A DNA stretch of 64,000 nucleotides from Hamiltosporidium tvaerminnensis FI-OER-3-3 (lineage: Eukaryota > Fungi > Microsporidia), in assembly GCA_022605425.2 (NCBI GenBank), contig JAKIMF020000011.1, positions 248,001-312,000 on the forward strand, given 5' to 3'. The notes under the pieces were generated by a model, which saw nothing but the letters and a program-made list of their open reading frames with translations, did not search any database and had not been told where the DNA came from. This document shows positions 23,720 through 51,020 of this stretch, one piece after another. Position 1 is the stretch's first letter, and the number at the start of each line of letters is the position of its first letter. The position numbers and the translations under genes were made by a program.

Positions 23720-25279
23720 ATGAATCTCTTCACCATTTTTTTAATTCAAAACTCCCTCTGTGCTGGTATTTCGAATCCGATCTTAGACATGAATTGCAAA
23801 AAAGTTCCAGATAATGCCACAGATTCACAGTTTATACAAGATATATTTAATCCTTCCGAACCGCCAGCTCTCGATCCTTTCCATATTAACATAACGAATA
23901 GACATCAAGATGTAATAGACGATATTTCTCGAGTCATACCTTACGTTAAAGTCATTATTGAAGCCCATTTAGAAATAACAAAGTGTATATTCGAAGATTC
24001 CATGAAAGAAGCTATCGAAGAACAATTGAATGATTTTAAGAAGCGCCCAAGTGATCCTAATTTCAAAAGTGAGAAACTCATATACAAATCGATACTTTTA
24101 AATTTTAAAAAAATCTTTTTAAAGAAGTATATTCAGTGTTGCATCAACCAAAATACCTTGGAACCAAATGAAATTAGTGTATTAACAAGAATTGTTAAAG
24201 TGTCGACACTCTCTAAGGATCTTTTTGTCAAAGAAAAGCTCAATGAAATCAAATCTAAAGAAATAACTGAAAAGCTACTCAATACCGAACACGAAATATC
24301 TGAGGTACTTCAAAGTAGTATTGAAGACAAAGCATTTAAGCAAATTATATTTGAAAATTTGTTTGTTGTTTTTGCAGTTAGCTTGCTAGTTCTGAATCAA
24401 AATTTACCAGATTTTTCGGTTTATAATGCAACAAAAAACGAAGAATATTTAAATTCGGAAATCAAAAATAATGAATTTTTAAAAATCATAAAAAAAATAT
24501 ATTCGAAGAATGCATGGCCACTTCCAAAATCTTATGAAAATCGAATTATGCAAACATCAGAACAATCAAAAGAATTACTAATTAAAGAACTTTGTGGGTT
24601 AATTTGTGAGAACTACCAAAACAAAAACTACAGAGATAAATTTAAGAAAAAAATCTTTACATTTATTTTTGAGGATGATAAACAAGATCGTTTACCATTA
24701 GTGATTCAAAATGTTTCGAAAAATATTTTTCCAAATGACTGGTCGAGTTGCGGACTTTTATGCTTTAAAGGAATTCTAGAAAGGCATTCAAATCACACTT
24801 TATACCTATCGTTTAGTTTGTCGATTGAAGACTGGCTCATAGTTTTTATCAGACAAATTTTTTCAAAATTTAAAAAAGAGAGGTTTTACAAAATAGTAAG
24901 TGAAGATTTTCCTGATGCTGAAGCAGTACGAAAAGAAATTCTTAAAGAAATATTTGGGGAAATCCCCGAAATCAGCCCCTTCTGTGATGATATAAAACTG
25001 TTTTTGGTTAAGTTAAAAGAGAATCTTAAATCCCAAACATATATTTCCTTTTATATTTACAAAGTTGAAGATTCAATTTTCAACGATATAATAACCGAAT
25101 TTTTTGAAGAAAAGAAAATATCCAAAACAGAAATTCTTCATGGAGGAAATATGAGTGATATAGATTTAAAAATCAGAAATAATGTTATGAGTTGTTTCGA
25201 ATATTGTTTTAAATCTACTTTGACCAGCCATTTTGGAAATGATGAATTTATAAAGAAAAAAACTATTATTTTTGAATAA
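23720..25279 (+). CDS. Lineage-specific secreted protein family, paralogue 1 (519 aa, mostly helical, K/I/F/E-rich)
   Basis: Intact 1560-bp ORF in DNA where the surrounding elements are decayed. Signal peptide MNLFTIFLIQNSLCAG and a CCC motif before the ATG. No domain recognised. Confidence 0.88.
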   Translation: MNLFTIFLIQNSLCAGISNPILDMNCKKVPDNATDSQFIQDIFNPSEPPALDPFHINITNRHQDVIDDISRVIPYVKVIIEAHLEITKCIFEDSMKEAIEEQLNDFKKRPSDPNFKSEKLIYKSILLNFKKIFLKKYIQCCINQNTLEPNEISVLTRIVKVSTLSKDLFVKEKLNEIKSKEITEKLLNTEHEISEVLQSSIEDKAFKQIIFENLFVVFAVSLLVLNQNLPDFSVYNATKNEEYLNSEIKNNEFLKIIKKIYSKNAWPLPKSYENRIMQTSEQSKELLIKELCGLICENYQNKNYRDKFKKKIFTFIFEDDKQDRLPLVIQNVSKNIFPNDWSSCGLLCFKGILERHSNHTLYLSFSLSIEDWLIVFIRQIFSKFKKERFYKIVSEDFPDAEAVRKEILKEIFGEIPEISPFCDDIKLFLVKLKENLKSQTYISFYIYKVEDSIFNDIITEFFEEKKISKTEILHGGNMSDIDLKIRNNVMSCFEYCFKSTLTSHFGNDEFIKKKTIIFE

Positions 25280-26099
25280 ATTATTAAGTTTTATGCGTTT
25301 TTATAACCAATTTCTTTACAATTTGAAGTTTTACGTGAAATTTACCCTTAAATAATAAATTCTGTGTTGAACAAAATTTTGAAGATATTTTTTTTAAAAT
25401 ACTTCTCAAGTATAAAAAAAATTAATTTAATAAATTTCATATCCAATGACTTACATTATTCCATTACTTACTAAAAAAAATAATCATAAAATGAGCTATG
25501 CAATTCCGACAGCAATTTGATAAAATTATAGTCGTACAAAAAAGTTTTTTTTAAATTCAAAATTGCAGGAAATCATATTTAGCGGACTGAAAACATTTCA
25601 AAACATTTGCGCAACATAAAGCAACTCTGAAGTGTCTGTATGTACTGGGCTAGTACAAAGGAACGAGATATTTTCAATACAGTCATATACTTGAATATAA
25701 CCAAGTGTTTTTTTAAAAATGAAATAAGATGTTGATGTTCGTTGTAACGAAATCGCGTTTTTACTTTATATATTGCCATTTTGGAAAGAGCTTTTAACAA
25801 ACAAAAATAAAGAAGACATCTTTATTACGTTTTTGCTGTAATTTTGACCATTATTCATCTATTTAGTTGTTAGTTATGCAATTCAAATTAAACAATGAAG
25901 TTGTGCTCTAAAAAAATATCATACAGAAGTATGAAGTAGACTCAATTATAATTGAAAGAGTTTAATTGGTTTATTTTTACTTTATTTTGTTTTTTCCTTA
26001 TATTTTATTTTGTATTTAGGATTAATTTTTGTTATTCTATTAAGTTATGGATAAAAAATCACCATAGATCTCTTACTTTAATTTTTATTAATTTCATTT

Positions 26100-29000
26100 T
26101 TCTAAAAATGAGTTAAATCAGAAAAAAAAGCAAATTTTTCTCTTTAAAATAATTTTTTCCACAATTTCAACCACTTCTATCTCTTCCTCCAACTCCAACT
26201 CTTCATTTGTATTAGTTTTTGGTTCCTTTTCTGTGGTTATGCCATGCAAAATAAGGGGTAAAATATGTTTTCTATTTTCCGATTTAAGATCTTCTTCCTC
26301 GTTGTCTATTATCTTTAAAGGGGGTGTTTGTTGTTTATGCATTTCAGCTCCTAAAATAACAATTAATGATACAATCTTCCAGCTCTCTTCGGCATTTGGT
26401 CTAGACTCAAGTCATCTTCGTCGATCAAAAGAAATTGTTTCGACTGTCTTCTTGAGTACTATGAATTATATATGACTCTACATTCATGGGTATTTGCAGT
26501 CTCTTACATACGTCTTATGGTATTTTGTCACAATACCGTTCCAGATTATCACATAAGGAATTATCTCTACAGTACATTAATAAATAAGACCTAACTCAAT
26601 TGCAAATACCTCATACTTCCTAAGATTCTCTGTTTCAACTAGTTAAAGAAAGTCTTGGGTAGTGATTCCTACTTCAATGAGGGTCATCCTATTTTATCTC
26701 TTGTCTAAAATAAATATATCTGGTCTGTTACACCGAATCTTGACATCAGTTTTTATTCTGGCGTCGACTCTTATCTCTGCATATTCGTTATCAAGAATTT
26801 CTTGAACTGAGTGGCTTCTAATTCGTTTCGAAGACTTAAACTTATATTTATTCAGCAAAAGTAAATTTATACATCGTACCATTTCATTGTGTCGTCTTTG
26901 TAGTCATGACTAAACATTTTTTCACATCTCGTTGCTAGGTGATCTACTGTTTTTCTAGACTGGTTGCAGGATTGAAACATACCTTCTGCACCCCAGAATA
27001 ACATTTCCATCCTGGATATAACAGAACACTGTTTCATCACGTGGTCTTACACTCCCTTTTTTTAACACACTTGAGGAGTTATTTACACTTACCAGCTCGT
27101 TATTTCTAGCACTATATAACTTTGAATGTAGTTTTCGGTTTTTGATTTCGTTGTATAGATTAGCTAGTTGAGCTTCTTTCAATTTATTTTTTGTGACTTG
27201 CTCTTCAAACCCGTATTTTACTTTTAAAAAGTTTAAATGCGTGAAAGGTAGGTTTTATTATTATTTTCAACTCTTAAGATTGCTGCTTTTCTGTCGATGT
27301 ATCTTTATGTTTTTCAAGACAATCCTAGAGTTGCAAAAGCATATGTTCGCTTTTAAATTCGCCACTATGTAAACTTCTTCCTAGTTCTTTGCGTGGAAGG
27401 TATAGACGTTCTTTACATCTTAGGCGCATATGTATTTTGTTCTTTACTAACACATCACGCACCGCATCATATAACTTAGAAAAGTCAGTCAGTTCAGTCG
27501 GAGTACATTTATATGATAATTTAGTAAAGAAATTGAGTTTTTTTAATAGCTTGAAATAAATTTCTTGCATTTAATCTCTTGCAATAAAGTCTTTCTACTC
27601 GCGCTTTAAGTTTAGTTTGTACAGCTTCAAATGACTTAATTGTTTGAACACCTCTGCTTTCTTCTATAATGCCAAGGTGTTTATAAACACCTATTCTTTC
27701 AAGAAGAGTAGCAGTATCTCCACCACATTGAACATTAGGAGCCGAATTCTTTTTGTTTTTCCAATCTTATATTATTAATGAACTTTGTAATCTCACTCGT
27801 CATTCCTTCCACTTTTTGTACATCTTCGGCAAAGAGCTTAAGATCATCAATAAACAAGAGTTGATTATTCGCGTAAGATTCTTTATCTGTCTTTATTTTC
27901 ACTCTTGTGTATTTTTAATTAAGCTTTCGCTCAATAGATCCATCCAAAACACAAACAACAATGGTGACAGACTATCCTATTGCAGAATCTCTCCATCGAT
28001 CTTCTTGCACATAATATTTTCAGGCTCAAATGATATATTAATTTTCTATTTTGATATAGATACTTAAATAAATTTCCGGATTCAATCACATAAATTAAGG
28101 TTTTTTATGAATTAAGTCAAATAAGCATGATCCATTGACTCATGGGGTTTTTTGACATGTATACATGTTGCCTTAAGATTTTTTGCGTACTATTTATTCA
28201 TTGAAACTTTTAAAAATACCTGGTATTTTGCTTCTTGCGCTTCTCTAAGCGCATCCACACTGATTATCCGTTAGTAATACTCGTCTTTTGCCTAAAGCTG
28301 TGAACTTTAGTAACACATTTTGACCTATGTTTATACAGGTTATCGGCCTGTGAACAGAATCAGTATTTAGTGTACTTTTAGGTATCAGATAGGTAAGTTT
28401 GCAATAATACCCGTCGACTTGAGGCGTTAATTCGTAACGTATGACTTTCACAATATCGTAAAGATATTTATGATGCTAAGTTTCTTGATCTAAAAGTTAT
28501 AAATACCATCAATTCCGGCGGCTTTCTAGTTAGGCAGCCAATTCATGCTATATTTAACTCTTCACGTGAAGAAAAAGCGGTCTGTTGCGTATCTGACACG
28601 AAAGGTATAAAAAAATCATCTTATGTAACTACCTTATTCTCTTTGTCTATATTGTAAACCAAACTTCTATAATTTCGACAGATAAACCAAATGCTCAAAT
28701 TCAACGCGCTCAGATAAGCCCAGATAGATTCGACCTCGGAATGACTCAAAGACGATTCTCTTTCCGGAATTTCTTCCTGCTCTCTTTAATCGGATGTTTT
28801 TTCTCGTAAAATTCGAAGCCTCATTCTTTTTAACCACAGACCTAGAGAAATCATTTATTCTGCTTAAGTCTAAATTAAACTCTCGCCTAATTTTTCTGGA
28901 CTTTTCGTTTCCGAAGTTAAGCTTTTTCTGTTTTTAAGCCTTCTCAAGAAGATATTTATAAATTACCAACTTGCAAAATTTACTTTCTATACTTTCCTTT

Positions 29001-29845
29001 TAAGCGGATCAAGTTTAGCCTTACTTGTCATCTCGCCATAGCATACATGAGCCGCATGAATGATCCGATCTGAATTACTAACATTCTTAGGCACATAACA
29101 TTCAGCATATTTACCTGTGATTCGATTTATGAGTACGAAAACTTTACTGTCAACTAATTCTACATAAGTTTTCTAGTTCGGACAACTACATCTCCGATTT
29201 CCTTCTCCGTGTTTCCTGGATTTTACAGAAGAACTTTTCTCTTGGGTTCATATAATGTAGTGTCAGTTAAGGAACATGACTCAGTGAGCAAGTTACGATT
29301 CTACGTCGGTCTCTATTCTCTTCTTGCCTTATTTCTCTTTCTGCCTTATTTTTTATTAATTTTTTTAACACATCAGTATCAACAGTTGACCAAATTCCTC
29401 ACTATGGTACCTAAGAAAGCAGACCAGCTATTTCTAGGCATTCTCTCAAATATTTTTTGCACTGCTAAAATAGCAGATCTAGGCCTTTCCTGCTCTACGG
29501 CTGTAACAGAGTCAAGCATTGAATGCAATTATATCAGTCGATTTCCTTCTAGAATAGCAGGTGCATTGAGGTTTTCTATTGTGTTGGCTGGTCTACACGC
29601 AGACGAATCGAGACAGGAAGAAGGGGGTGTGGAATCGAGCAGGCTTACTGGAGTAACCCAAAACGCATTGCTCGATGGGGAGTGGATTTTGTTATGGATG
29701 GTCGGTTGTGGTTGATGCGTCTAGATATCTTCACGTCATCTCTATCACACGTTTTTGTCTCTTTTAAACTAATTTACGATTTGTTTACAGCCTTTATTTC
29801 TTCATTTTTTATATTTTATCTGCCAACTTTTTTTCTTCTACCCAT
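26100..29845 (-). mobile_element. Decayed full-length RLE non-LTR retrotransposon (older subfamily), unit 1
   Basis: ATGGGTAGAAG start at 29845 is homologous to 20615. Fragments include TYLIPK..HRPITC, LLFIDDL, KSSKRIRSHSVQEILDNEYAEIRVD..RPDIFILD and the acidic tail. The 3' boundary is approximate. Confidence 0.88.
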
Positions 29846-31098
29846 AAAGAACACAAAATACATTGAATTGATTTTTATTAAAAATAAATGCTCTGTCATA
29901 TTACGTAACAGTATTTCTAAATTTTCACTCGTTTATGTAATCTTCTTTTTAAAAATTGTAGGAAGCTAAGACAAGCCGAAACCAGATAAATAGCTTAAAT
30001 TTATGTTGATTGTGATGCTTTGGTGCATAATTTTGCTTCAAATGCCACAAACACCCTATAAGTAAATAATAGATTTAATAGTAGTTATTTATACAACATT
30101 TAATAATACTAGGCACCTTGAAATAAAAATCCAAGGGACCAATATGAAAGACGAATTCAATATATTTTTTGTATTTAAAACTTTTAAATTAATAGAAAAA
30201 AGTTATTAACAAAAAAAAACATGTAAAAACAAGCTATTCTATTATAAAAATTCATTGTTTTCTCATTTGAAAAGTAATATAATACAGGAGAAGAAACCAA
30301 ACACGTAATTCAAATGAGGTGATATAAGAAACATGAATAACAAAGACTTATAAAAAATTAAACAACATGATTATATTCATAAAAAATAGTGCAATCAAGA
30401 AAAAATCGCGTTTTTTAAAAAACATGAAAGTGATTAATTTCAAACCGGTTGACTTTTTAACTTGGATTTTGCAAGGCTTGGAATCATAGGAAAAATATTA
30501 TACATGTTCGGCTGATATGAAATAGCTGTTAAGCTTCCTAGAATATATACTAGAAGATTCAACCTATTATTGAGTAGCAAGTTAACATATGCATCGCAAA
30601 ATATGAATTGTTATAAAAAGAAAGTGATATATCAACAAGATGAAATGCTTTTCAAAGTATGTGAACGTTAATTAAATTTTTATATTTATAAAGCTTTTTA
30701 CTGGAAAAAATATAGGTTAGAAAGAGAAATTAAGAAAAGCACTGGTAGCAAAATTATTTTACGAAATGAAAACTTTATCACTTTCAAAGTTAAAATTTCT
30801 TTAAAAATGAGTATGTGTTTGATATAGGTTCGAAACAACTAAATATTTGATATAATTCCTCTTAAGGAAATAATGGTTTGTTATCTGCTTAGAACTGTCT
30901 CTCCGGTAAAACTAATACAACAATTTACCTTGATGGACCGTAGAAGATTTAGCGTCTTGTGATTAGAAAATGCCTCGGAATTACTTCATTATCATATACT
31001 GGTATATTTAAATGCCATTTTTTTACTTTTACTGAATAGAATTTGATTTCATTCTGTAAAACGAACCGAAAAAATTTTCTTAATAAAGAATCCTAAAT

Positions 31099-31331
31099 TC
31101 ATTCATACTTTGCACTACAGCTCTGTAAGCGCGTTGGCTCTCTCAGCAATACTACCCACAGGTCTTTTTCAAGTGGATTTATTTATTTTTCGGGTTTCGT
31201 AACAAGTTAGTTTTAAAGGGTGGCTTGTTAGCCTTACGCCCAACACCAACATGGAGGACCAGTTCTTTTTAGTCGCCTCTTACGACAAGCATAGAATACT
31301 CCAAACCAATTCTGCACCCGGCATGGTTGGC
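31099..31331 (-). mobile_element. Non-autonomous RTE-derived SINE-like element (233 bp), unit 1
   Basis: 15-bp TSD taaagaatcctaaat at 31084-31098 and 31332-31346. Minus strand carries RTE 5'-UTR motifs (TGTCGTAAGAGGCGACTAAA; CTGGTCCTCCATGTTGGTGTTGGGCGTAAGGCTAACAA) and an RTE-type 3' end (GCTGTAGTGC...ATGAATGA). Confidence 0.8.
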
Positions 31332-31358
31332 TAAAGAATCCTAAATAGCATTGTTAAA

Positions 31359-33027
31359 TGTCGCGGCCCATAATCCCCCCCATATCCTTTGTGCCCCGTT
31401 ATTTCTAATACCCCCCCTTTATTTTCAATATATTTAACGCCTCTGTATTTACTATTAATTAATTTTTAACACACCCAAATTAAAATATGAGGTATTACGT
31501 TTCTAAATATAATAAGAGTCAAATGAAAATAAATGTTTATATACTTTTAATTTTATTTTTCACTCTAAAATTTTTTATCGGAATCAATTTTAAAAATAAA
31601 ACCATTTCCTTCTATCTTAACATTTCTTATTTTAAAAATAACATATAGTTAAAAAAAAAGAAAAAAACAAAGTAAAATTTAATCCGCTTTATTAGACTTT
31701 CTAAACAGTTATTTTTTCAGAATTAACGTTTTCTAATTCTATCATATTACCATTAAAACTATTTGTCACTGTAAAGACATAATCATCTAAAAAAGAATCA
31801 AACAAGACACGTTTAGTCTAGTATTCATGTCAAAATGCTTTTTTTAACAAAACCTAATCTCTAATAGGAAGATTTCTTATTTTTTTATTGTAATCTTTAC
31901 TTTCTATGATTCTTTTTTATATTTTTCAAAATTTTTAATTACTTCTGTATTAGTTTAAAAATTCTTATCAATTTCAGAATCAGTGGTTGTTGAAGATGAA
32001 GCAAGATATCAGGACCCATTTACTTCATTATACATTTAAGACCCAATCTCTAAATTCCACTGTGTCTTTATATCCCGGATCATGTTTGCTTGCTGTTTTA
32101 CATAAGAAATTGTTTCGTCAACAAATACTAAATCATCCTAGTTCCTCTGTCACTATATTACCAGAAAGAAGATTATAAATCCAGTTGATCATTAAAAGGT
32201 TGTAATGATGATTTATTTGAGGCACTATGTATTGTTCTATTATAAGCCAATATAACATCAATATAAAAACAGATCCATCTTTTTGTACCTGTAACATATA
32301 ACTTCTTTTGCATACTATCTTTTAATGTTTGATTCATCTTTTCGATTTGTTCCTGTGCCTTTGGATTATGATGTCTTCCATATATTATTTGAATGTTAAG
32401 ATCAGTTAAGTATGTTTCAGCCATTCATTTTGAAATTCTTCATCATTATCAGATTCAATCTCAACTGGAATACCAAAATTATAATAGAAATTTATATGAA
32501 TCTTCTTCGGACTGTGAAGTCTTGTTTATCGTTTTAAAAATATAGAAATACGTTGTATAAGTGTCAATTACGTTTCGAGTCCAATAATCTGATCATTTTG
32601 ATCAGCGTATCTTCTAAGAGCTACACAATTCATCATGAATAAATTGTATTATTTTTTTAAATTTATTCATTGATAAGAGTGATTTGCTCGGAAATTCGTT
32701 TCCTTATAACATGTTATTGCATTATAAAATATTTATTTAGTCGATAATATTAAGCATTAGAAGCCGTAAAACCTTGCATTGGGACTATTTGTATATGTAT
32801 TGCCTTTTAATCGTTTAGATTCAAAGACTCTAATCCGACCATATAAATATGGAAATTTTATTTGAGCAATAGAAGCTGGAGTAAATACGAAATAACCCTG
32901 AAATTATAGGATAAAAATAAAATACAAATAACATATATCTATTATAAATAAGGGTGTTATTAATACATAAAATTGCATTGGAAATAACGGGCACAAAGGA
33001 CATGGGGGGGCACCAAAGACCGTGACA
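31359..33027 (-). mobile_element. Ginger-like (TGT..ACA) DNA transposon with decayed rve integrase, unit 1
   Basis: Imperfect ~53-bp TIRs: TGTCGCGGCCCATAATCCCCCCCATATCCTTTGTGCCCCGTTATTTCTAATAC versus the reverse complement of 32975-33027. Integrase motifs GIPVEIESDNDEEFQN and GRHHNPKAQEQIEKMNQTLK...W...VILAYNRTIHSA. Confidence 0.8.
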
Positions 33028-33695
33028 TCTAATAAGACCACACTAGAAAACCCGATGTAAACATTTAAATGATAGACATTTTTCTTTTTGTCAAAAAAGC
33101 CAAAAATATCATATATTTTCACAAAATAAATCAACTCACTCTTTAGAACTGAGTGAACTGAAAGAATAAAAATAAAAGGATTCGTTCAAAATTACAAAAA
33201 TTAAATACTAAACATTGCCTTAATATTTTACGTTAAGTTATAATTTTGGCTTATAATGTTTACAAAGCATTGTATATATATCTAGAAATAGCAAATACCT
33301 ATTGATTAAGGGGATATATTTAGTAAAGAGTATGGCAATAATTTTTAATTTTTTTTGTAGACGAAAGAAGCTGTGTTTTAACAAATACAGATTCAAATTA
33401 AAGTCCAGTGAAAAATCTTATAAAGCTCTAAAATATGCAAATAATTTTTTGCTAGGTAGAAGTATGGCAATGCAGAGTGATTTATAACCACTATAAAAAA
33501 GTAGAGAATTTTTTTACGAATAGCAAGAATCATAAATCTTGCAATAGTAAACATACAAACCGAATAGATTTTGAAATTCAAATATATAGAAACACGGAAA
33601 AATTCAAATAAAGCAAACAAGAGCAGAAAAAAAAACAAATCATCTAATTAATTATATTTTTTTCTTCGTATTAAATTTTAAAAAATAACAGACTT

Positions 33696-36425: not shown

Positions 36426-36591
36426 AAAGAAATAAAAAATTAAAAAAATTACTTTTAAGTCATTTTCCTAATTTAGAAATTCTCAATTAAATTGAATTTT
36501 TGACTTTTTTGACTTTTTATAAATCAAAATTAATTAAAATCAATATTTTGACAGGAACACTGGGTTTATAAAGCAAGAAAATCAAACCCCC

Positions 36592-38151: not shown

Positions 38152-38969
38152 ATTTTTAAGTTTTATGCGTTTTTATGACCAATTTCTTTATAATTTGAAG
38201 TTTTACGTGAAATTTCCTCTTAAATAATAAGTTCTGTGTTGAACAAAATTTTGAAGTTATTTTTTTAAAAAACCTCTCAAGTATAAAAATTAATTTAATA
38301 AATTTCATATCCAATGGCTTACATTATTCCATTACTTACTAAAAAAAATAATCATAAAATGAGCTATGGAATTCCGACAGCAATTTGATAAAATTATAGT
38401 CGTACAAAAAAGTTTTTTTTAAATTCAAAATTGCAGGAAATCATATTTAGCGGACCGAACACATTTCAAAACATTTTGCGCAACATAAAGCAACTCTGAA
38501 GTGTCTGTATGTACTGGGCCGATACAAAGGAACGAGATATTTTCAATACAGTCATATACTTGAATATAACCAAGTGTTTTTTTAAAAATGAAATAAGATG
38601 TTGATGTTCGTTGTAACTAAATCGCGCTTTTAATTTATATATTGCCATTTTGGAAAGAGCTTTTAACAAACAAAAATAAAGAAGACATCTTTATTACGTT
38701 TTTGCTGTAATTTTGACCATTATTCATCTATTTAGTTGTTAGTTATGCAATTCAAATTAAACAATGAAGTTGTGCTCTAAAAAAAATATCATACAGAAGT
38801 ATGAAGTAGACTCAATTATAATTGAAAGAGTTTAATTGGTTTATTTTTACTTTATTTTGTTTTTTCCTTATATTTTATTTTGTATTTAGGATTAATTTTT
38901 GTTATTCTATTAAGTTATGGATAAAAAATCACCATAGATCTCTTACTTTAATTTTTATTAATTTCATTT

Positions 38970-41900
38970 TTCTAAAAATGAGTTAAATCAGAAAAAAAAG
39001 CAAATTTTTCTCTTTAAAATAATTTTTTCCACAATTTCAACCACTTCTATCTCTTCCTCCAACTCCAACTCTTCATTTGTATTAGTTTTTGGTTCCTTTT
39101 CTGTGGTTATGCCATGCAAAATAAGGGGTAAAATATGTTTTGTATTTTCCGATTTCAGATCCTCTTCCTCGTTGTCTATTATCTTTAAAGGGGGTGTTGG
39201 TTGTTTATGCATTTCAGCTCTAAAATAACAATTAATGATACACTCTTCCAGCTCTCTTCGGCATTTGGTCTAGACTCAAGTCATCTTCGTCGATCAAAAG
39301 AAATTGTTTCGACTGACTTCTTGAGTACTATGGTTTATATATGCCTCTACATTAAGTGGTATTTACAGTCTCTTAACATACGTCTTATGGTATTTTGTCA
39401 CAACACCGTTCCAGATTATCACATACGAATTTTTCTACAGTACATTAATAAATAAGACCTAACTCATTTGCTAATACCTCATACTTCCTAAGCTTCTCTG
39501 TTCAACTATTCTAAGAGAGTCTTGGGTAGTAATTCCTACATCAATGAGGGTTATCCTATTCTGTCTCTTGTCTAAAAGAAATATATCTGGTTTTTACACA
39601 GAATCTTGACATCAGTTTTTATTCTGGTGTCTACTTTTATCTCTGCATATTCGTTATCAAGAATTTCTTGAACTGAGTGGCTTCTAATTCGTTTCGAAGA
39701 CTTAAACTTATATTTATTCAGCAAAAGTAAATTTATACATCGTACCATTTCATTGTGTCGTCTTTGTAGTCATGACTAAACATTTTTTCACATCTCGTTG
39801 CTAGGTGATCTACTGTTTTCCTAGACTAGTTGCAGTGTTGACACATACCTTCTGCATCCCAGAATACATTTCTATCCTGGAAATAACAAAATCCTGCTTC
39901 ATTGCGTAATCCTACAATTCCTTTCTTTAACCATTTTGAGGAGTTATTTAAACTTACCTGTTTGTTATTTCTAGCACTATATAACCTTGAATGTGGTTTT
40001 CGGTTTTCTATTTCGTTATATAAGTTAGCTAGTTGAGGTTCTTCCAATTTCTTTTTTGTGACTTCCTTTTCCAACCCGTATTTTATTTTTAAGAAGTTTT
40101 TAATTAGTGAAGGGTAGGTATTATTATTATTCTCAACCTTTAGGATTACTGCTTTTCTGTCGATGTATCTTTGTGTTTTTCCAGACAATCCTAGAGTTGC
40201 AAAAGCATATTTTGCTGTTTACCTCGACCCTATGTAAACCTCTTCCAAGTTCATTGCTTGGAAGGCATAGACGTTCTTTACATCTTAGGCGTATATGTAT
40301 TTTTTTCTTTACTAAAACTACACGCACCGCATTATCTAACCCAGAGAAGTCAGCCGATTTTAGTCGGGGTACACCTTTATGATAGTTTAGTAAAGAAATG
40401 GCTTGTTGATAAATTGCTTCAAAGAAATTTATTGTAGTTAATCTCGGGCGACAAAGTCTTTGAACTTGTGCTATCAGTTTTATCTGTACACATTTAAACT
40501 TCTTAATTGTCTAAAAACTTCTGCTATCTTCTATAATTCAAAGGTGTTTATAAACACATAACCCTTCAAGAAGTGTAGCAGTAAATTCATCACATTGAAC
40601 ATTAGTGGCTGACATCTCTTTGTTAATTTCCAATCCTTTTTTAATAAACTTTGTAACCTCCTCTGTATCTACTTCCACTTTTTGTACATCTTCGGCAAAG
40701 AGCTTAAGATCATCAATAAAAAAGAGTTGATTATTCGCGTAAGATTCTGTATCTGTCTTTATTTTCACTCTTGTGTATTTTGAATTAAGCTTTCGCTCAA
40801 TAGATCTATCCACAACACAAACAACAATGGTGACAGACATCCCTATTGCAGAATCTCTCCTTCGATCTTCTTGCACATAATATTTTCAGGCCCAAATGAT
40901 ATATTAATTTTCTATTTTGATACAGATACTTAAAAGAAATTTCCGAATTCAATAGATAAATTGAGGTTTTTTATGAATTAAGTCAAATAAGCATGATCCA
41001 TTGACTCATGAGGTTTTTTGACATGTATACATGTTGCCTTAAGATTTTTTGCGTACTATTTATTCATTGAAACTTTTAAAAATACCTGGTATTTTGCTTC
41101 TTGCGCTTCTCTAAGCGCATCCACACTGATTATCCGTTAGTAATACTCGTCTTTTGCCTAAAGCTGTGAACTTTAGTAACACATTTTGACCTATGTTTAT
41201 ACAGGTTATCGGCCTGTGATCAGAATCAGTATTTAGTGTACTTTTAGGTATCAGATAGGTAAGTTTGCAATAATACCCGTCGACTTGAGGCGTTCCTTCG
41301 TAACATATGACTTTCACAATATCGTAAAGATATTTATGATGCTAAGTTTCTTGATCTAAAAGTTATAAATACCATCAATTCCGGCGGCTTTCAAGTTAGG
41401 CAGCCAATTCATGCTATATTTAACTCTTCACGTGAAGAAAAAGCGGTCTGTTGCGTATCTGACACGAAAGGTATAAAAAAATCATCTTATGTAACTACCT
41501 TATTCTCTTTGTCTATATTGTAAACCAAACTTCTATAATTTCAACAGATAAACCAAATGCTCGAATTCAACGCGCTCAGATAAGCCTAGATAGATTCGAC
41601 CTCGGAATGACTCAAAGACGATTCTCTTTCCGGAATTTCTTCCTGCTCTCTTTAATCGGATGTTTTTTCTCGTCAAATTCGAAGCCTCATTCTTTTTAAC
41701 CACAGACCTAGAGAAATCATTTATTCTGCTTAAGTCTAAATTAAACTCTCGCCTAATTTTTCAGGACTTTTCGTTTCCGAAGTTGAGCTTTTTCTGTTTA
41801 TGAGCCTTCTCAACGAGATCTTTATATAGTACTAACTTGCAAAGTTTACTTTCTATACATTCCATTTTAGCGGATCTAGGTTAAGCTTACTTGTTACCTC

Positions 41901-42713
41901 GCTATAGCATACCTGGGCCGCTTGGATGATTCGCTGCATCACTAACATTCGTAGGGACATGAAATTCAGCATATTCACCCGTGATCTAATTTATGAGGTC
42001 TAAAACTTTACTATCAATTAATTCACGTGGAAGTTTTCTAATTTGAGTCACTATATCTCCGATTTCTTTTTCCGAGAGTTCCTTGATTTTACACAAGAAC
42101 TTTTCTCTCAGGTTCATTTAGAGTGTGTGTCAGTTAAGGAACATGGATCAGTGAGAAACGTGACGATTCTACGTCGCTCTCTATTCTCTTCTTACCTTAT
42201 TTCTCTTTCTGCCTTATTTTGTTTAAATTTTTTTAACACATCAGTATCAACAGTTGACCAAATTCCTCACTATGGTACCTAAGAAAGCAGACCAGCTATT
42301 TCTAGGCATTCTCTCAAATATTTTTTGCACTGCTAAAATAGCAGATCTAGGCCTTTCCTGCTCTACGGCTGTAACAGAGTCAAGCATTGAATGCAATTAT
42401 ATCAGTCGATTTCCTTCTAGAATAGCAGGTGCATTGAGGTTTTCTATTGTGTTGGCTGGTCTACACGCAGACAAATCGAGACAGGAAGAAGGGGGTGTGG
42501 AATCGAGCAGGCTGGCTGGAATAACCCGGAACGCATTGCTCGATGGGGAGTGGATTTTGTTATGGATGGTTGGTTGTGGTTGATGCGTCTAGATATCTTC
42601 ATGTCATCTCTATCACACGTTTTTGTCACTTTTAAACTAATTTACGATTTGTTTACAGCCTTTATTTCTTCATTTTTTATATTTTATCTGCCAACTTTTT
42701 TTCTTCTACCCAT
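38970..42713 (-). mobile_element. Decayed full-length RLE non-LTR retrotransposon, unit 2 (mosaic relative to units 1 and 3)
   Basis: Start ATG at 42713. Fragments include LFFIDDLKLFA, CYFQDRNVFWDAEGMCQHC and the acidic tail at 38988-39212. Confidence 0.88.
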
Positions 42714-43970
42714 AAAGAACACAAAATACATTGAATTGATTTTTATAAAAAATAAATGCTCTGTCTTATTACGTAACCAAAGTATTTCTAAATTTTCTGC
42801 TCGTTTATGTAATTTTTTTTTATGAATTTTAGGAACCTAAGAGACAAGTCGAAACCAGATAAATAGCTTAAATTTATATTGATTGTAATGTTTTCGTGCT
42901 TAATTTTGCTTCAAACGCTACAAAAGACTCTATAAGTAATTAATAGTTAAAATAGTAGTTATTTGTATTATATTTAATAATACTAGGCACCTTAAATAAA
43001 AATTTAAAAGACCAATATGAAAGGCGAATAAAATAGATTTTTTTTAGTTCTAAACTTATAAATAAATAGAAAGAAGTTAATTACAAAAGAAACATGTGAA
43101 AACATGCTATTCTATGGTAAAATTTCTTTTTTTAAATATAAAAAATAATATAATACAGCAGAAGAAACCAAACACGTAATTCAAATGAGGTGATATAAGA
43201 AACATGAATAACAAAGACTTATAACAAATAAAACAATGATTATATTCAAAAAAATAGTGCAATTAAGAAAAAAAATTGCATTGATGGAAAAACATGAAAG
43301 TGATTCATTTCAAATCGATTGACTTTTTAACTTGGATTTTGCAAGGCTTGAAATGATAGGAAAAATATTATAGATTTTCGGCTGATATGAAATAGCTGTT
43401 AAGCTTCCTAGAATATATACATGAAGAGTAAAGCTAATATTGAGATTCGAGCTAACATATGCATCGCAAAATATGAATTTTATAAAAACGAAGTGATATA
43501 TTCACAAGAAAAAATGCTTTTCAAAGTATGTAAACGTTAATTAAATTTTTATATTTATAAAGCTTTTTACTGGAAAAAATATAGGTTAGAAAGAGAAATT
43601 AAGAAAAGCACTGGTAGCAAAATTATTTTACGAAATGAAAACTTTATCACTTTACCACTAGAAAATTCTTTAAAAATGAGTATGTGTTTGATATAGGTTC
43701 GAAACAACTAAATATTTGATATAATTCCTCTTAAGGAAATAATGGGTTGTTATCTGCTTAGAACTGTCTCTCCGGTAAAAGAATTACAACAACAATTTAC
43801 TTTAAGGAAATGTAGAGTATTTAGTAGCTTGATATTAGAAAATGCCTCGGAATTTCTTCATTAGCATAAACTGGTATATTTAAATGCCATTTTTTTACTT
43901 TTACTGAATAGAATTTGATTTCATTTTTCAAAACGAACCGAAAAAATTTTCTTAATAAAGAATCCTGAAT

Positions 43971-44204
43971 TCATTCATCCTTGGCACGATAGCCCTGTAA
44001 GCGCCTTGGCCTCCCTCAGCAATACTACCCACTGGTCTTTTTTAAATGGATTTATTTACTTTTTCGGGTTTCGTAACAAGTTAGTTTTAAAGGGTGGCTT
44101 GTTAGCCTTACGCTCAACCCTAACATGGAGGACCAGTCCTTTTTAGTCGCCTCTTACGACAAGCAGAAACAAACCAAACCAATTCTGCAATCGGCATGAT
44201 TGGC
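43971..44204 (-). mobile_element. RTE-derived SINE-like element, unit 2
   Basis: TSD taaagaatcctgaat (43956-43970) / taaagaatcctaaat (44205-44219). 3' end reads GAGGCCAAGGCGCTTACAGGGCTATCGTGCCAAGGATGAATGA. Confidence 0.8.
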
Positions 44205-44231
44205 TAAAGAATCCTAAATAGTATTGTTAAA

Positions 44232-45901
44232 TGTCGCGGCGCATAACCCCCCCCATATACTTTATGCCCCGTTATTTCTAATACCCCCTGCTTTATTTTC
44301 AATATATTTAACGCCTCTGTATTTACTATTCATTCAATTTTAACACACCCAAATTAAAATATGAGATATTTTGTTTCTAAATATAATAAGACACAAATGA
44401 ATATAAATGTTTTTATACTTTTATTTTATTTTTCGCTCCAAAATTTTTTATCGGAATCAGTTTTAAAAATAAAACCATTTCCTTCTATCTTAACATTTCT
44501 TATTTTAAAAATAACATATATTTAAAAAAAAAAGAAAAAAACAAAGTAAAATTTAATCCGCTTTATTAGACTTTCTAAACAGTTATTTTTTCAGCATTAA
44601 CGTTTTTTAATTCTATCATATTACCATTAAAACTTTTTGTCCCTGTAAAGACATAATCATTAAAAAAAGAATCAAACAAGACACGTTTAGTCTAGTATTC
44701 ATGTCAAAATGCTTTTTTTAACAAAACCTAATCTCCATTAGGAAGATTTCTTATTTTTTTTATTGTAATCTTTACTTTCTATGATTCTTTTTTATATTTT
44801 TCAAAATTTTTAATTACTTCTGTATTAGTTTGAAAATTCTTATCAATTTCAGAATCAGTGGTTGCTGAAGATGAAGCAAGATATCAAGACCCATTTACTT
44901 CATTATACATTTAAGACCCAATCTCTAAATTCCACTGTGTCTTTATATCCCGGATCATGTTTGCTTGCTGTTTTACATCAGAAATTATTTCGTCAACAAA
45001 TACTAAATCATCCTAGTTCCTCTGTCACTATATTACCAGAAAGAAGATTATAAATCCAGTTAACCATTAAAAGGTTGTAATGACGATTTATTTGAGGCAC
45101 TATGTATTGTTCTAATATAAGCCAATATAATATCAATATAAAAACAGATCCATATTTTTGTACCTGTAACATATAACTTCTTTTGCATACTATCTTTTAA
45201 TGTTTGATTCATCTTTTCGATTTTTCTTTTGCCTAAGGATTATGTGGTCTTCCATATATTATTTGAATGTTAAGATCAGTTAAGTATGTTTCAGCCATTC
45301 ATTTTGAAATTCTTCATCATTATCAGATTCAATCTCAACTGGAATACCAAAATTATAATAGAAATTTATATGAATCTTTTTCGGACTGTGAAGTCTTGTT
45401 GATCGTTTTAAAAATATAGAAATACGTTGTATAAGTGTCAATTACGTTTCGAGTCCAATAATCTCATCATTTTGATCAGCGTATCTTCTAAGAGCTATAC
45501 AATTCATCATGAATAAATTATATCATTTTTGTAATTTATTCATTGGTAAGAGTCATTTGCTCGGAAATTCGTTTCCTTATAACATGTTATTGCATTATAA
45601 AATATTTATTTAGTTGATAATATTAAGCAATAGAAGCTGTAAAACCTTGCATTGGGACTATTTGTATATGTATCGCCTTTTAATCGTTCAGATACAAAGA
45701 CTATAATCCGACCATATAAATATTGAAATTTTATTTGAGCAATAGAAGCTGGAGTAAATACGAAATAACCCTGAAATTATAGGATAAAAATAAAATACAA
45801 ATAACATATATCTATTATAAATAAGGGTGTTATTAATACATAAAATTGCATTGGAAATAACGGGCACAAAGGACATGGGGGGGGCACCAAAGACCGTGAC
45901 A
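44232..45901 (-). mobile_element. Ginger-like integrase transposon relic, unit 2
   Basis: TGTCGCGG... / ...CCGTGACA TIRs; homologous to 31359-33027. Confidence 0.78.
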
Positions 45902-46569
45902 TCTAATAAGACCACACTAGAAAACCCGATGTAAACATTTAAATGATAGACATTTTTCTTTTTGTCAAAAAAGCCAAAAATATCATATATTTTCACAAAA
46001 TAAATCAACTCACTCTTTAGAACTGAGTGAACTGAAAGAATAAAAATAAAAGGATTCGTTCAAAATTACAAAAATTAAATACTAAACATTGCCTTAATAT
46101 TTTACGTTAAGTTATAATTTTGGCTTATAATGTTTACAAAGCATTGTATATATATCTAGAAATAGCAAATACCTATTGATTAAGGGGATATATTTAGTAA
46201 AGAGTATGGCAATAATTTTTAATTTTTTTTGTAGACGAAAGAAGCTGTGTTTTAACAAATACAGATTAAAATTAAAGTCCAGTGAAAAATCTTATAAAGC
46301 TCTAAAATATGCAAATAATTTTTTGCTAGGTAGAAGTATGGCAATGCAGAGTGATTTATAACCACTATAAAAAAGTAGAGAATTTTTTTACGAATAGCAA
46401 GAATCATAAATCTTGCAATAGTAAACATACAAACCGAATAGATTTTGAAATTCAAATATATAGAAACACGGAAAAATTCAAATAAAGCAAACAAGAGCAG
46501 AAAAAAAAACAAATCATCTAATTAATTATATTTTTTTCTTCGTATTAAATTTTAAAAAATAACAGACTT

Positions 46570-47594
46570 GAATCTAGAGACACCATTATGATACTAATTT
46601 GGCATTTAAAACAAAAATTTAGAAAAATTACACCTAAATTTATATTTGTAACTTTACAATTCCAATTTACTAACATCTTCTACCACTCACCAATAAATTA
46701 AATTAAAAAATCAAAAATTTAAACTATGGAAGTTTTAAACAGCTTTATTAAGAGCTAAAAAATCTTGAAATTAGATCTAATAATTAATTTTCTCCCTTTT
46801 AACAGCAAATACTAAAGGTAACCAAATTTTCTTCAGTTCCTCATCGATTTAAGATAAACTTCATACATGGAAACCAATTCTTCTCAATCTTTTGGTAAGA
46901 GCACCAGAAGATTTGATAAAATCAATCGCACGAGTGATTTATTGTTTTCTTTTAAAATATTTTTTTCAAATCACTATAACCTTTCTAACAGTCTGTATAG
47001 ATTCTGCTACCGGGCTTCATAAGTTGTAATATTATGCAGGTAATTATTTCTTTAGTTATATCAGAGATAGTTATCGACGTTATTTTACGAGCTGATTTTC
47101 TTTCCCCTAACACTATTGTACTTTTGTATACCAAATTTAAATTCGTGAATTTGCTCAGATAATTTCATTGCCTCAAATATATTCCTGCGTTACAGTCAAA
47201 TTACTTTTGTTTTATCATTCATTTTTTTAACTAATGTCTTTAATCTTCTATTTATAATATCTCGACATAAATATTGTTCTCATTTGTGTGTTTGCAAGGA
47301 AACCAAAAGCTGTTTTTAGATGATTTTAAGATTTTTTTTATAGTTGTCGAGCAAAGTACCTTTAAAACCAGAAACTTTCTTTTTACATGTAGACCATGTA
47401 TAAATTAAAAATAATGATGATTATGAATAGAGAATTATTCAAGAAATACAAGTGCTGCATTTTTGGGCCAAAAAAAGTTAATATATGGCACTTAAGCCAA
47501 TCACTAATATATCGAAACTAAAACTCATGTAAAATTAAATTTTTTGAATTTTTGTTTTTAAAAAAAATTTAGTATCAAAAAACTACTTTCCACC
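46570..47594 (-). mobile_element. Merlin relic, copy 3
   Basis: Nearly identical to copy 2, with the same flanks. Confidence 0.75.
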
Positions 47595-48689
47595 AACAAG
47601 CTTTTAATTTCGAAGATTTTCTAGAGTCAAAAATGTTGAAAAAGCAATCAAAAAGCCAAATTAAATTTATATTCTTTTATATTGAATAATGAGGGTAAAC
47701 CAGAAAAAATACATTAAATGATCACAAAAAAACAAATGTCAATCAAGAATATTTTCGTTTTTTTAGCAAACAGTTTGAAAAAAAAAATGCAAACATGATT
47801 TATATGTGCGCAATACAAACTAGAGTATATGCAAAGGTTGTTTTATTGCACCAGATTGCACTAAATTCACGCTTTTGAAAAAAAATACAATGAATGAATA
47901 ATTTTTTGTTAAAATAGGTTGTCTGATTAGATTTATAACGTAAGAAAAAGTTATTACTTTATTTCTTTTTTGACATATACTTTAAGGATGGAATTATTTC
48001 CCCGTTTTGGAAATCGGCTTCGGAATATAGAATTAATTCTTCCGCCAAATCAAGAGTTTTTTTAAAATAAAAACCAGACAATTTTTTTAATTTGGATATT
48101 CTTAGATATAATTAATGCGCGTCTCATAAATTTATGTTGATTTGATTCTTTCAACCTGATAAATTCTGTTTTTAAATCGATTTTTATTATTAATATAGAA
48201 TTGAACATAAATAAACATCCGATATGCAATGAATGTGTGGAATTGGTTTGAGAATCACTGGTTAACATTTTGATGAGATATAAACCACATTAGATATATT
48301 GGCTAATCAATCATAATTTCGTATTAAAACAGATTTAAAGAAGTAAATTTCAACTAAAAGACAATCTCAAGAATACATTTCTTCATACGGAAATCTTACT
48401 ATGACTTATGCAACATAAATTTTATAGATTTAGCTCAGAAAAAGAGAGGAATCTATGAATTTCGTTTTGGTTTGACCCCTTAAAACAGGATTTTCGTAAA
48501 AGAGGAATTAAAAATGAAAATGCAAAGACATTGACCATCGACAAAACGCTTTAAATATGTTCATCATAAACACCTAGAAGTGGAAAAAATCGGGATTAAA
48601 TGAGCAATAAAGATTTGAGAAGATATATAATTGATAGTCTAAGAAATTTTCTGTTGCAAATAAATTATTTTAACTATTGAAATTGAAGC

Positions 48690-49295
48690 TAAGATATGAG
48701 GAAAAATAAGATAACACACATTGAAGTAGGAATCACATCCCAATATTCTGTTCAAACAGTTAAAACGGAGAAACTCAGGAATTATGACTTAGTAGAAAAT
48801 GATTTAGGTCTTATTTATAAATGGGGTGCAGAGATGATTCCTTATGTGATGACCTGGGACGGTATTGTGACAGAATACAACAAAACATATGCTAAAAGGC
48901 TACAAATACCAATGAATGTAGAGGCATATATACAATCCATAGTACTCAAGAAGACAGTCGAAACAATTTCTTTTGATCGACAAAGAGAATCTTAGTCAAG
49001 TCAAATACAATAAAAAGCTGAAAGAGAGTGCGATTAAGTGTTATACTAGGCTGTGATGCAAAAACAACCAAACGCTCCCTTTAAAGCAGGTAGACAACTA
49101 GGAAGATGGTGTTAAAACGGAAAATACAAAAAATATTACATCTCATATGTCAGAAGGAGGAACCAAGTTATAGAAACCTAAAATTAACATCAATTAAGTG
49201 TTAGATGTTACAGAAGAAAGGATAGTGGTTAAAGAAGTAGAATGAAATTTATAATAGTTATAAAGATGTTTTAACCTAGAATTCCTTTAAATAAA
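48690..49295 (+). mobile_element. 5'-truncated RLE non-LTR fragment, unit 3
   Basis: ORF 48696-48995 is an RLE fragment, followed by the element 3' end. Confidence 0.85.
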
Positions 49296-49463
49296 AAAAG
49301 AAAATAAAAATTAAAAAATTTGCTTTTAAGTCATTTTCCCAATTTAGAAATTCTCAATTAAATTGACTTTTTTGACTTTTTTGACTTTTTATAAATCAAA
49401 ATTAATTAAAATCAATATTTTGACAGGAACACTGGGTTTATAAAGCAAGAAAATTAAACCCCC

Positions 49464-51020
49464 ATGAATCTCTTCTCCATTTTTTTAATTCAAAACTCCC
49501 TCTGTGCTGGTATTTCGAATCCAATGTTTGATACGGATTTCAATACAGTTCATCATGATTCTTTTCTTTTACTTTTTACACAAGATACATTTAATCCTTC
49601 TGTTTCGCCAGCTCTCGATCCTTTCCATATTAACATAACGAATAGATATCAAGATGGGATAGACGACATTTCTTTAATCATACCTTACGCTAAAGTCTTT
49701 CTTGAAGCCCATTTAGAAATAACAAAGTGTATATTCGAAGATTCAATGAAAGAAGCTATTGAAAAACAATTGAAGGATTTTAAGAAGCGCCCAAGTGATT
49801 TTGATTTCAAAAATGAAAAACTCATATACAAAATGATACTTTTAAATTTTATAAAAATCTTTTTAAAGAAGTATATTCCGTGTTGCATCAACCAAAAAAC
49901 TTTGAAAACAGATGAAATTATTGTATTAAAACATATTTTAAAGGGGCCGACATTCTCTGAGGATTTTTTTGTCGAAAAAATGCTCGATATAATCATACCT
50001 AAGGAAATAACTGAAAAGCTACTCAATACCGAAAAAGAAAAAATTGAAGTAATTCAAAGTGGTATTAAAAACAAAGCAGTTAAGAAACTTATATTTGAAA
50101 ATTTGTTTTTCGCTTTTGCAGCTAGCTTGCTAGTTCTGAATCAAAATTTACCAGATTTTTCGGTTTATAATGCAACAAAAAACGAAGAATATTTAAATTC
50201 GAAAATCAAAAATAATGAATTTTTAAAAATCATAAAAAAAATATATTCGAAGAATGCATGGCAACTTTCAGCATCTTATGAAAATCGAATTATGCAAACA
50301 CCCGAAGAATCAAAAGAAGTGCTTTTTATGGGACTTTGTGGGTTAATTCTTGAGAACTACCAAAACAAAAACTTCAGAGATATATTTAAGAAAAAAATCT
50401 TTACATTAATTTTTGATAATAATAAACTTCGTTTACCAGTAGTGATTCAAAATGTTTCGAAAAATATTTTTCCAACTTACTGGTCGAGTCGCGAACTCTT
50501 ACGCTTTAAAGAATTACTCGAAAAATATTCAAATCACACTTTATACCTATCGTTTAGTTTGTCGATTGAAGACTGGCTCATAGTTTTTATCAGACAAATT
50601 TTTTCAAAATTTAAAAAAGAGAGGTTTTACAAAATAGTAAGTGAAGATTTTCCTGATGCTGAAGCAGTACGAAAAGAAATTCTTAAAGAAATATTTGAGG
50701 AAATCCCCGAAATCAGCCCTTTCTGTGATGATATAAAACTGTTTTTGGTGAAGTTAAAAGAGAATCTTAAATCCCAAACATATATTTCCTTTTATTTTGA
50801 CAAAGTTGAAGATTCAATTTTCAACGATATAATAACCAAATTTTTTGAAGAAAAGAAAATATCCAAAACAGAAATTCTTCATGGAGGAAATATGAGTGAC
50901 TTAGATATAAAAATAAGAAATAATGTGATGTATTGTTTCGAATATTGTTTTAAATCTACTTTGACCAGCCATTTTAGAAATGATGAATTTATAAAGAAAA
51001 AAACTATTATTTTTGAATAA
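49464..51020 (+). CDS. Lineage-specific secreted protein family, paralogue 3 (518 aa)
   Basis: Intact ORF with signal peptide MNLFSIFLIQNSLCAG and CCCCC before the ATG. A mosaic of paralogue-1-like and paralogue-2-like blocks plus private changes. Confidence 0.88.
   Translation: MNLFSIFLIQNSLCAGISNPMFDTDFNTVHHDSFLLLFTQDTFNPSVSPALDPFHINITNRYQDGIDDISLIIPYAKVFLEAHLEITKCIFEDSMKEAIEKQLKDFKKRPSDFDFKNEKLIYKMILLNFIKIFLKKYIPCCINQKTLKTDEIIVLKHILKGPTFSEDFFVEKMLDIIIPKEITEKLLNTEKEKIEVIQSGIKNKAVKKLIFENLFFAFAASLLVLNQNLPDFSVYNATKNEEYLNSKIKNNEFLKIIKKIYSKNAWQLSASYENRIMQTPEESKEVLFMGLCGLILENYQNKNFRDIFKKKIFTLIFDNNKLRLPVVIQNVSKNIFPTYWSSRELLRFKELLEKYSNHTLYLSFSLSIEDWLIVFIRQIFSKFKKERFYKIVSEDFPDAEAVRKEILKEIFEEIPEISPFCDDIKLFLVKLKENLKSQTYISFYFDKVEDSIFNDIITKFFEEKKISKTEILHGGNMSDLDIKIRNNVMYCFEYCFKSTLTSHFRNDEFIKKKTIIFE

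Follow-up and report, generated by a model that had tools for sequence, protein, structure and literature searches.

A tandem array of three mosaic genes from a Hamiltosporidium-restricted family with a local excess of amino-acid replacements

Hamiltosporidium tvaerminnensis is a microsporidian of Daphnia magna for which a near-chromosome assembly is available (PMC10542269; PMC12449221). We analysed a window of 64,000 nucleotides of contig C16 (C16:248001-312000) and found that it contains a head-to-tail tandem array with one intact gene in each of its three complete units (g1, g2 and g3; positions refer to the window unless a contig is named). The three genes belong to a family confined to the genus Hamiltosporidium, their reading frames are maintained by selection, they are mosaics of exchanged sequence blocks, and in one part of the coding sequence amino-acid replacements exceed the neutral expectation. 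The encoded protein yields a confident and novel-looking structural model. Taken as a whole, the locus is best explained by a selected, conversion-shuffled, genus-specific secreted or surface protein that would meet a variable factor of the Daphnia host; we rate the chances that this explanation is correct as about even. The array and its genes are located as follows.

20807–60422, no strand assigned: tandem array of three complete 12.87-kb units and a partial fourth of about 1 kb (self-BLAST)
20807–33701: unit 1, complete unit of the head-to-tail array
33702–46575: unit 2, complete unit of the head-to-tail array
46576–59421: unit 3, complete unit of the head-to-tail array
59422–60422: start of unit 4, about 1 kb, partial
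23720–25279, forward strand: g1, intact open reading frame (ORF) of 519 amino acids
36592–38151, forward strand: g2, intact ORF of 519 amino acids, the copy modelled by AlphaFold2
49464–51020, forward strand: g3, intact ORF of 518 amino acids, a mosaic built from g1-like and g2-like blocks

The spacing of the repeat families gives a unit period of 12,866–12,887 bp. By self-BLAST, 20807–47562 aligns with 33702–60422 at 93.5% identity and 20807–34688 with 46576–60422 at 96.1% identity. The array lies at approximately 269–308 kb on the 1.0-Mb contig, well inside it and not in a subtelomeric position. A 17-kb contig of H. magnivora aligns colinearly across a unit junction, indicating that the tandem arrangement is common to both species and not an assembly artefact. 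The spacer of the units is transposon debris. A preliminary description of this DNA had noted one intact gene per unit among dead transposons, and indeed the three ORFs stand in debris of long interspersed nuclear elements (LINEs).

Overall identity is 80% for g1/g2 and g1/g3 and 86% for g2/g3. Differences are concentrated in the first 357 aligned residues, where g1 and g2 differ at 100 positions (72% identity), g1 and g3 at 97 and g2 and g3 at 63, against 8, 8 and 9 differences in the last 163 residues. The g1/g2 counts given in the preliminary description proved to be exact. It had also described variation in blocks alternating with codon-identical invariant blocks and near-identical non-coding DNA upstream of the genes. 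Both are borne out: codons 361–400 contain no nucleotide difference across g1, g2 and g3, and 22406–23005 diverges by 0–0.5% between units. The protein sequence of g3 recurs unchanged on a contig from an older assembly.

Non-coding DNA of the units has accumulated 51 frameshifting indels per 655 substitutions. The genes contain no frameshift per 158 substitutions, where about 12 would be expected, and their two indels both measure 3 nt. We further simulated neutral evolution of the first 357 codons by placing the observed number of substitutions at random with a spectrum derived from the spacer. Trials free of stop codons were obtained in 0 of 400 cases for g1–g2, 0 of 400 for g1–g3 and 3 of 400 for g2–g3. 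Since the neutral expectations for both frameshifts and stops fail, all three copies have been kept by selection.

Maximum likelihood (ML) codon models were applied to seven sequences, with p values calculated against omega (dN/dS, the non-synonymous to synonymous rate ratio) = 1. Omega was 0.67 for codons 1–120, 1.86 for codons 121–300 (p = 0.0017), 0.75 for codons 301–358 and 0.46 for codons 359–520 (p = 0.023). In 60-codon windows it reached 5.15 for codons 121–180 (p = 3e-5); codons 181–300 remained at about 0.9–1.0 by ML and exceeded 1 by counts. Taken whole, codons 1–358 gave 1.06. The diversifying selection that had been proposed for the variable N-terminal region is therefore supported for codons 121–300 and not supported for the first 358 codons as a whole. 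The region with excess replacements is located as follows.

36952–37491, forward strand: codons 121–300 of g2, with the peak in codons 121–180 (36952–37131)
24080–24619, forward strand: codons 121–300 of g1
49824–50363, forward strand: codons 121–300 of g3

When each distinct change in codons 121–300 is counted once, 160.8 non-synonymous stand against 23.2 synonymous changes (omega about 2.2, P = 7e-5), the neutral ratio being 76:24. Single-step changes only give 124 non-synonymous and 15 synonymous changes (P = 6e-5), and omega from the counts ranges from about 2.2 to 2.6. Multi-nucleotide mutations were considered as a cause of omega above 1 and rejected, because the excess stays with single-step codon changes only. 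It appears when the window copies are analysed by themselves (P = 0.0026) and again for those of H. magnivora (P = 0.0014), two sets which share blocks and are not fully independent. The fraction of non-synonymous differences (Nd) lay above the neutral simulation in 392–400 of 400 runs, and in 33 columns of this region at least three amino acids occur among the seven sequences. A 113-amino-acid antisense ORF at 36813–37154 and 49685–50026 (both reverse strand) overlies codons ~74–188 of g2 and g3, including the region with the highest omega; g1 has none, and it is probably a chance ORF.

The alternative blocks of g1–g3 are found in other combinations in four array-type genes of H. magnivora. 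One of them (P0003) equals g1 over codons 21–40 and 121–140 and g3 over codons 141–180 and 301–360, with zero nucleotide differences; such matches without any difference between H. magnivora and g1 or g3 extend over 20–60 codons. Two others (P0005 and P0006) have a second C-terminal haplotype. Among six sequences the minimum number of recombination events (Rm) was at least 31 in 1.4 kb, and the pairwise homoplasy index (PHI) statistic lay under all 500 permutations (0/500). At the 200 variable sites g3 is g2-like 100 times and g1-like 50 times, 41 sites are specific to g3, and at the remaining 9 each copy has its own state. These sites form 43 runs in comparison to 67.7 expected (P<0.0002), which means that the mosaic is clustered. 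Sharing of patches on the kb scale is also seen between the units of the two species. The other block combinations together with the recombination signals indicate that short-tract gene conversion is pervasive and has continued since the species split, and it acts on the non-coding parts of the units as well. The variants thus arise by short-tract conversion that shuffles blocks as well as by point substitution.

Divergence between units, measured in 200-nt windows, forms a patchwork over the whole unit, alternating between 0% and 10–21% in gene and dead LINE alike. At 26970–27792 and 28955–29350 unit 2 differs by 14–22% from units 1 and 3, which are identical to each other, and at 20807–21405 unit 1 differs by 9–14% from units 2 and 3. 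The first two thirds of the gene show 11–19% nucleotide divergence, with a synonymous divergence (dS) of 0.14–0.18 for g1 against g2 or g3. Over the first ~1,060 bases of the gene (~355 codons) all three pairs differ, whereas most of the spacer has two identical units. At the end of the gene divergence drops.

24783–26370, no strand assigned: low-divergence (homogenised) patch with 0–6% divergence, compared with 10–19% in the part of the gene just before it; it takes in the final ~165 codons of g1 plus ~1.1 kb of non-coding sequence after the stop codon

Equivalent patches are present in units 2 and 3. The near-invariant C-terminus, taken earlier as a constant scaffold, is thus largely a homogenisation patch that runs on past the stop codon. 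In a single-copy orthologue pair of the family, all 10 replacements lie within codons 1–357 and the last 161 codons are free of them, and residues invariant across the family are twice as dense in the C-terminal third. In agreement with its low omega, this third is therefore somewhat more constrained in addition to being homogenised.

Both LINE haplotypes of the units show 83–90% identity to the 38–39 other genomic copies scored. On this basis recent ectopic conversion from other LINE copies was rejected as the source of the divergent spacer patches, and the deep patches represent old divergence between units. A single-copy family member occupies a colinear locus in H. tvaerminnensis and H. 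magnivora, and over 4.5 kb the two sequences share 98.8% identity (dS 0.014, dN 0.008). Measured against this species difference of 1.2%, the variant blocks of the array are about 10 times more diverged than the species. The dS of the N-terminal region equals the 14–21% of unconverted dead-LINE patches, so most N-terminal divergence is old divergence between paralogues and not recent diversification. At 22406–23005 and 25781–26170 the units of H. tvaerminnensis are identical, yet the H. magnivora unit (L031) differs by 2.5–10%. This exceeds the single-copy level and would fit homogenisation of these patches to different old haplotypes in the two species.

The preliminary description had suggested searching the genome for other members. 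A six-frame search of the assembly (21,638,905 bases, 17 contigs) returned 30 matches, with about 15 further loci at 26–49% identity. Full-length frames are present in 8 genes of the genome, the three array copies and five paralogues outside the array (L005, L006, L007, L009 and L014) on contigs C16, C4 and C10; the remaining family loci, about 8, are split or contain stops. Only the three array copies are more than 43% identical to the array genes, apart from one dead copy on C12. In the databases the nearest matches are 'hypothetical proteins' from H. magnivora, which share 76–81% identity. A profile of the 8 members gave 23 matches among 1.84 billion (1.84e9) cluster representatives, and all 10 of the 10 clusters looked up contained only proteins of H. 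tvaerminnensis or H. magnivora, all named 'hypothetical'. The family is restricted to the genus Hamiltosporidium. Pfam yielded nothing above threshold for the three proteins, their neighbours and 22 family members, the family profile had 0 matches to PDB sequences at E values up to 10, and an ESM Atlas search by features gave no usable match.

Some of the other family loci are noteworthy in their own right. The dead dispersed copy of the array type on C12 (L004, C12:183468-185012) has the same leader, 43% identity and 23 in-frame stops. Three older H. tvaerminnensis annotations (P0008–P0010) resemble gene models of such remnants, and P0009 and P0010 continue into unrelated sequence. At C16:874964-921495 (L005, L006, L007, L011/L015; contig positions) two pairs of paralogues are mirrored around ~898.2 kb, at 874964(-)/920107(+) and 881594(-)/913481(+), a symmetry that points to an inverted duplication of large size. 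Over 4.4 kb L005 and L006 share 97.4% identity (dS 0.038, dN 0.011); the second pair includes one copy broken into ORFs of 290 and 218 amino acids.

All 8 intact family members open with a hydrophobic leader of 12–16 residues, which is probably a signal peptide, and end with a conserved lysine-rich tail.

36592–36639, forward strand: hydrophobic N-terminal leader of g2, codons 1–16, modelled as a helix (2–16) followed by disorder
23720–23767: position of the leader in g1
49464–49511: position of the leader in g3

An AlphaFold2 model of g2 based on a family alignment of 22 sequences had a mean predicted local distance difference test (pLDDT) score of 76.8 and a predicted template modelling (pTM) score of 0.77. 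It places the leader in helix 2–16, followed by a disordered stretch to residue 49 that holds the first variable block, a strand (51–59), an all-helical sub-domain (62–303) and a strand-helix core (311–518) to which the first strand is paired. The most variable helices are 149–161, 166–177, 190–202 and 204–228, in which 69–80% of positions vary, and the C-terminal helices and strands vary least (0–15% of positions).

The favoured explanation combines these findings as follows. An old tandem triplication would have produced the units, each with one functional member, of about 520 amino acids, of the genus-restricted family. Short-tract gene conversion between units would be ongoing, homogenising some patches including the C-terminal third and the 3' flank, and elsewhere recombining old variant blocks into new combinations. 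Selection would hold all three frames open and would favour amino-acid change in the helical sub-domain in codons 121–300, most sharply in codons 121–180. The protein would comprise a short secretion-type leader, a disordered linker, the helical sub-domain at ~62–303 and an alpha/beta core formed by strand 51–59 and the C-terminal third. It may be secreted or exposed on the surface and contact a variable host (Daphnia) factor, in which case each of the three copies would combine the shared scaffold with a contact region of its own. Secretion or surface exposure is the most economical functional reading in view of the leader, the restriction to one clade, the existence of paralogues and the local rise of omega above 1. 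We infer that the array proteins are expressed, secreted and exposed to the host.

Several observations weigh against this explanation. Codons 1–358 as a whole have an omega of about 1 and a dS equal to old neutral divergence, so relaxed constraint explains much of the variation. The preliminary description had itself named a dN/dS well below 1 combined with neutral dS as speaking against diversifying selection; the dS does match the neutral patches, and omega is about 1 overall and above 1 in codons 121–300. Furthermore, the choice of codons 121–300 as the stretch with omega above 1 followed a sliding scan, the 60-codon ML sub-windows restrict significance to codons 121–180, and recombination violates the single-tree assumption of the codon models. 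Weak purifying selection has been reported genome-wide in Hamiltosporidium (PMC6944219). Helix 204–228, the most variable one (80% of positions), is at the same time the most hydrophobic part of the protein, which fits a lipid-facing or buried, swap-tolerant helix better than a recognition surface, and hydrophilicity is not significantly higher at variable than at invariant positions (p = 0.07–0.2). Finally, a sequencing-run index contained four runs of unspecified kind with about 68% of the words of the locus, and no RNA run that matched it.

The main rival is that the genes are old paralogues under weak constraint, in which an open frame and a foldable helical protein are needed and no change is favoured, the variation being due to ancient divergence and patchy homogenisation. 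We consider this somewhat unlikely. It accounts for omega near 1 over most of the N-terminal part and in codons 181–300 by ML, for the agreement of dS with the dead-LINE patches and for a patchwork of identity that is equally strong in non-coding DNA, and it would be in line with the raised dN/dS reported across Hamiltosporidium (PMC6944219). It does not explain the peak. Omega is heterogeneous, below 1 on either side of codons 121–300 and far above it in codons 121–180, the single-step changes depart from the neutral ratio, the H. magnivora copies by themselves show this excess too, and many columns of this region carry three or more amino acids.

A second possibility is programmed variation, in which the copies would donate sequence to one another by frequent, perhaps targeted conversion and a single copy expressed at a time would present new mosaics. 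Mosaic parasite families formed by segmental conversion include Plasmodium var, Trypanosoma VSG, Pneumocystis MSG and Babesia ves. The array resembles them in the short-tract recombination of blocks among paralogues, the alternation of conserved and variable segments and block types older than the species, and the exchanged tracts, the high Rm and the different mosaics in species only 1.2% apart would suit such a system. However, these families have tens to thousands of copies, with a large silent-donor archive, usually subtelomeric, and one-at-a-time expression. The array consists of three close copies inside a contig, and together with one dead dispersed copy on C12 they do not amount to a silent archive. 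The frames are complete in each copy and the upstream regions similar, conversion patches are as common in the non-coding parts of the units, which gives no sign of targeted conversion, and the host is an invertebrate without antibodies or adaptive immunity. We therefore regard programmed variation as very doubtful.

An equally poor chance is given to an internal parasite protein, whether a degenerate dynamin-like membrane-shaping factor, a spore or membrane protein with change-tolerant hydrophobic helices, or a transposon-associated cargo gene spreading with the repeats. Among the points in favour of this idea are the structural neighbours of the model. VIA-align of residues 73–242 placed the stalks of dynamin, Drp1, Mgm1, MxB, SynDLP and OPA1 on top (Z 8.4–5.1 over 134–152 residues). 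This part of the model, a long antiparallel helical bundle, resembles in outline the stalk folds of the dynamin superfamily (5a3f, 8v8t, 6ql4, 4x0r; Z 8.4). For the separately modelled C-domain (pLDDT 77.4) the best match was a designed protein (Z 6.1), with the G-domains of Rag and G-alpha next (Z ~5); the three-layer alpha/beta core of Rag GTPase G-domains (6nzd, 8yl2) resembles the modelled core in outline (Z 5.6). All of these Z scores lie within the background range that the tool itself states for helical models. DUF5600, the EHD helical domain, gave a sub-threshold match in 3 of the 22 family members scanned (E = 0.01), helix 204–228 is hydrophobic, and the family is dispersed with many broken copies. 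On the other hand, the GTPase motifs (P-loop GxxxxGK[ST], DxxG and [NT]KxD) are missing from the seven array-type sequences, and the Pfam profiles Dynamin_N, Dynamin_M and GED match none of the 22 family members. The topology differs as well: the bundle is inserted after the first strand and the domain order is another, with no sequence or profile match to dynamin or G-domain folds. The leader is kept in all intact members, an omega above 1 would be unusual for housekeeping machinery, and a single-copy member stands at a colinear locus in both species.

With Foldseek against PDB the lowest E value was 0.41 for the full-length model, against 0.18 for the C-domain, with no convincing match, and the ESM Atlas structure search gave TM scores of at most 0.24. 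A match to a housekeeping fold had been named beforehand as evidence against a host-interacting family; no housekeeping fold was identified by Foldseek, Atlas or VIA-align, and the predicted fold of g2 appears novel. On H. magnivora contig PITI01000098 (L035) a single-copy member of the C10 type (L035:5001-6557) lies 2.4 kb downstream of a true dynamin gene with Dynamin_N, Dynamin_M and GED (L035:712-2643). Given the weak stalk-like matches of the family, this neighbourhood is probably a coincidence.

Two further systems can be compared with the array. Plant NLR and fungal effector tandem clusters evolve by birth-and-death and conversion. They resemble it in tandem copies with transposon spacers, patchy homogenisation and positive selection confined to one sub-domain; protein and organism are unrelated, and the likeness is evolutionary only. 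Closer in organism are the large gene families of putative host-exposed proteins of microsporidia (NemLGF1/5 type), which are defined by criteria including at least 10 homologous members per species and clade-specificity (Reinke et al. 2017, PMC5423893). These are likewise limited to one genus, often have adjacent paralogues, carry an N-terminal targeting-type leader, evolve fast and contain no recognisable domains (PMC5423893). The array family is clade-specific in the same sense, with the looked-up clusters coming from Hamiltosporidium only, and has no sequence relationship to them by the profile search. It is small: 8 genes are intact and about 8 loci broken, compared with the minimum of 10 members for a large family. 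Unlike the NemLGF1/5 type, the copies are arranged in 12.9-kb transposon-filled tandem units well inside a contig, and their exposure to the host is putative.

The spacers and the flank of the array contain the following LINE-derived features.

26165–29491, reverse strand: degenerate LINE-like retroelement remnant in unit 1, 74% identical to 16888–20246
39035–42359: LINE-like remnant in unit 2, counterpart of 26165–29491
51903–55228: LINE-like remnant in unit 3, counterpart of 26165–29491
22936–23553, no strand assigned: LINE-derived segment upstream of g1, 170–780 bp before the start codon
35817–36434: LINE-derived segment upstream of g2, counterpart of 22936–23553
48692–49306: LINE-derived segment upstream of g3, counterpart of 22936–23553

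The relative of the remnant at 16888–20246 contains an RVT_1 reverse-transcriptase ORF, and a first look found more than 600 candidate copies of the remnant across the genome. A frame of 168 amino acids within the remnants of units 1 and 3 is the sole ORF of at least 150 amino acids in the array besides the genes. The upstream segment 22936–23553 is 75–77% identical to 1066–1682 and to 17431–16819. An Rfam scan of the window found nothing, and the short spacer ORFs had no Pfam matches. Upstream of the array, two inverted LINE segments (1–1671 and 16826–18492, 94.8% identical) flank a stretch of about 15 kb with a HEAT-repeat gene and three ORFs without Pfam matches (308–1639, forward strand; 4844–6244, reverse strand; 8169–9674, forward strand). 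The HEAT-repeat gene, just upstream of the array, is an ORF of 308 amino acids at 10942–11868 on the reverse strand (HEAT_2 / HEAT_PBS, E = 2e-27). We take its repeat pattern to be that of deoxyhypusine hydroxylase, an ordinary housekeeping gene.

Daphnia and Hamiltosporidium are a field and laboratory model of host-parasite coevolution. We found no published parasite gene tied to this interaction, and the Hamiltosporidium literature consulted reports no such family. The locus described here is a concrete candidate: the genes are confined to the genus, bear a leader, have frames kept by selection, exchange blocks and show an excess of replacements in a stretch of 60–180 codons. Lineage-specific, fast-evolving families are already an established theme in microsporidia. 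The array in addition shows that a transposon-rich, weakly selected microsporidian genome can retain old variation, with blocks about 10 times older than the species split persisting beside freshly homogenised DNA. More speculatively, the array might be a self-contained generator of diversity in a largely clonal microsporidian, in which conversion among three expressed paralogues reshuffles ancient trans-specific blocks of a host-contact helical domain. We hold this to be improbable. If true, new variants would arise without sex, and the array would be the first cassette-shuffling system described in microsporidia. It would then offer a direct molecular handle on Daphnia-Hamiltosporidium coevolution, through a helical domain of previously unseen fold.

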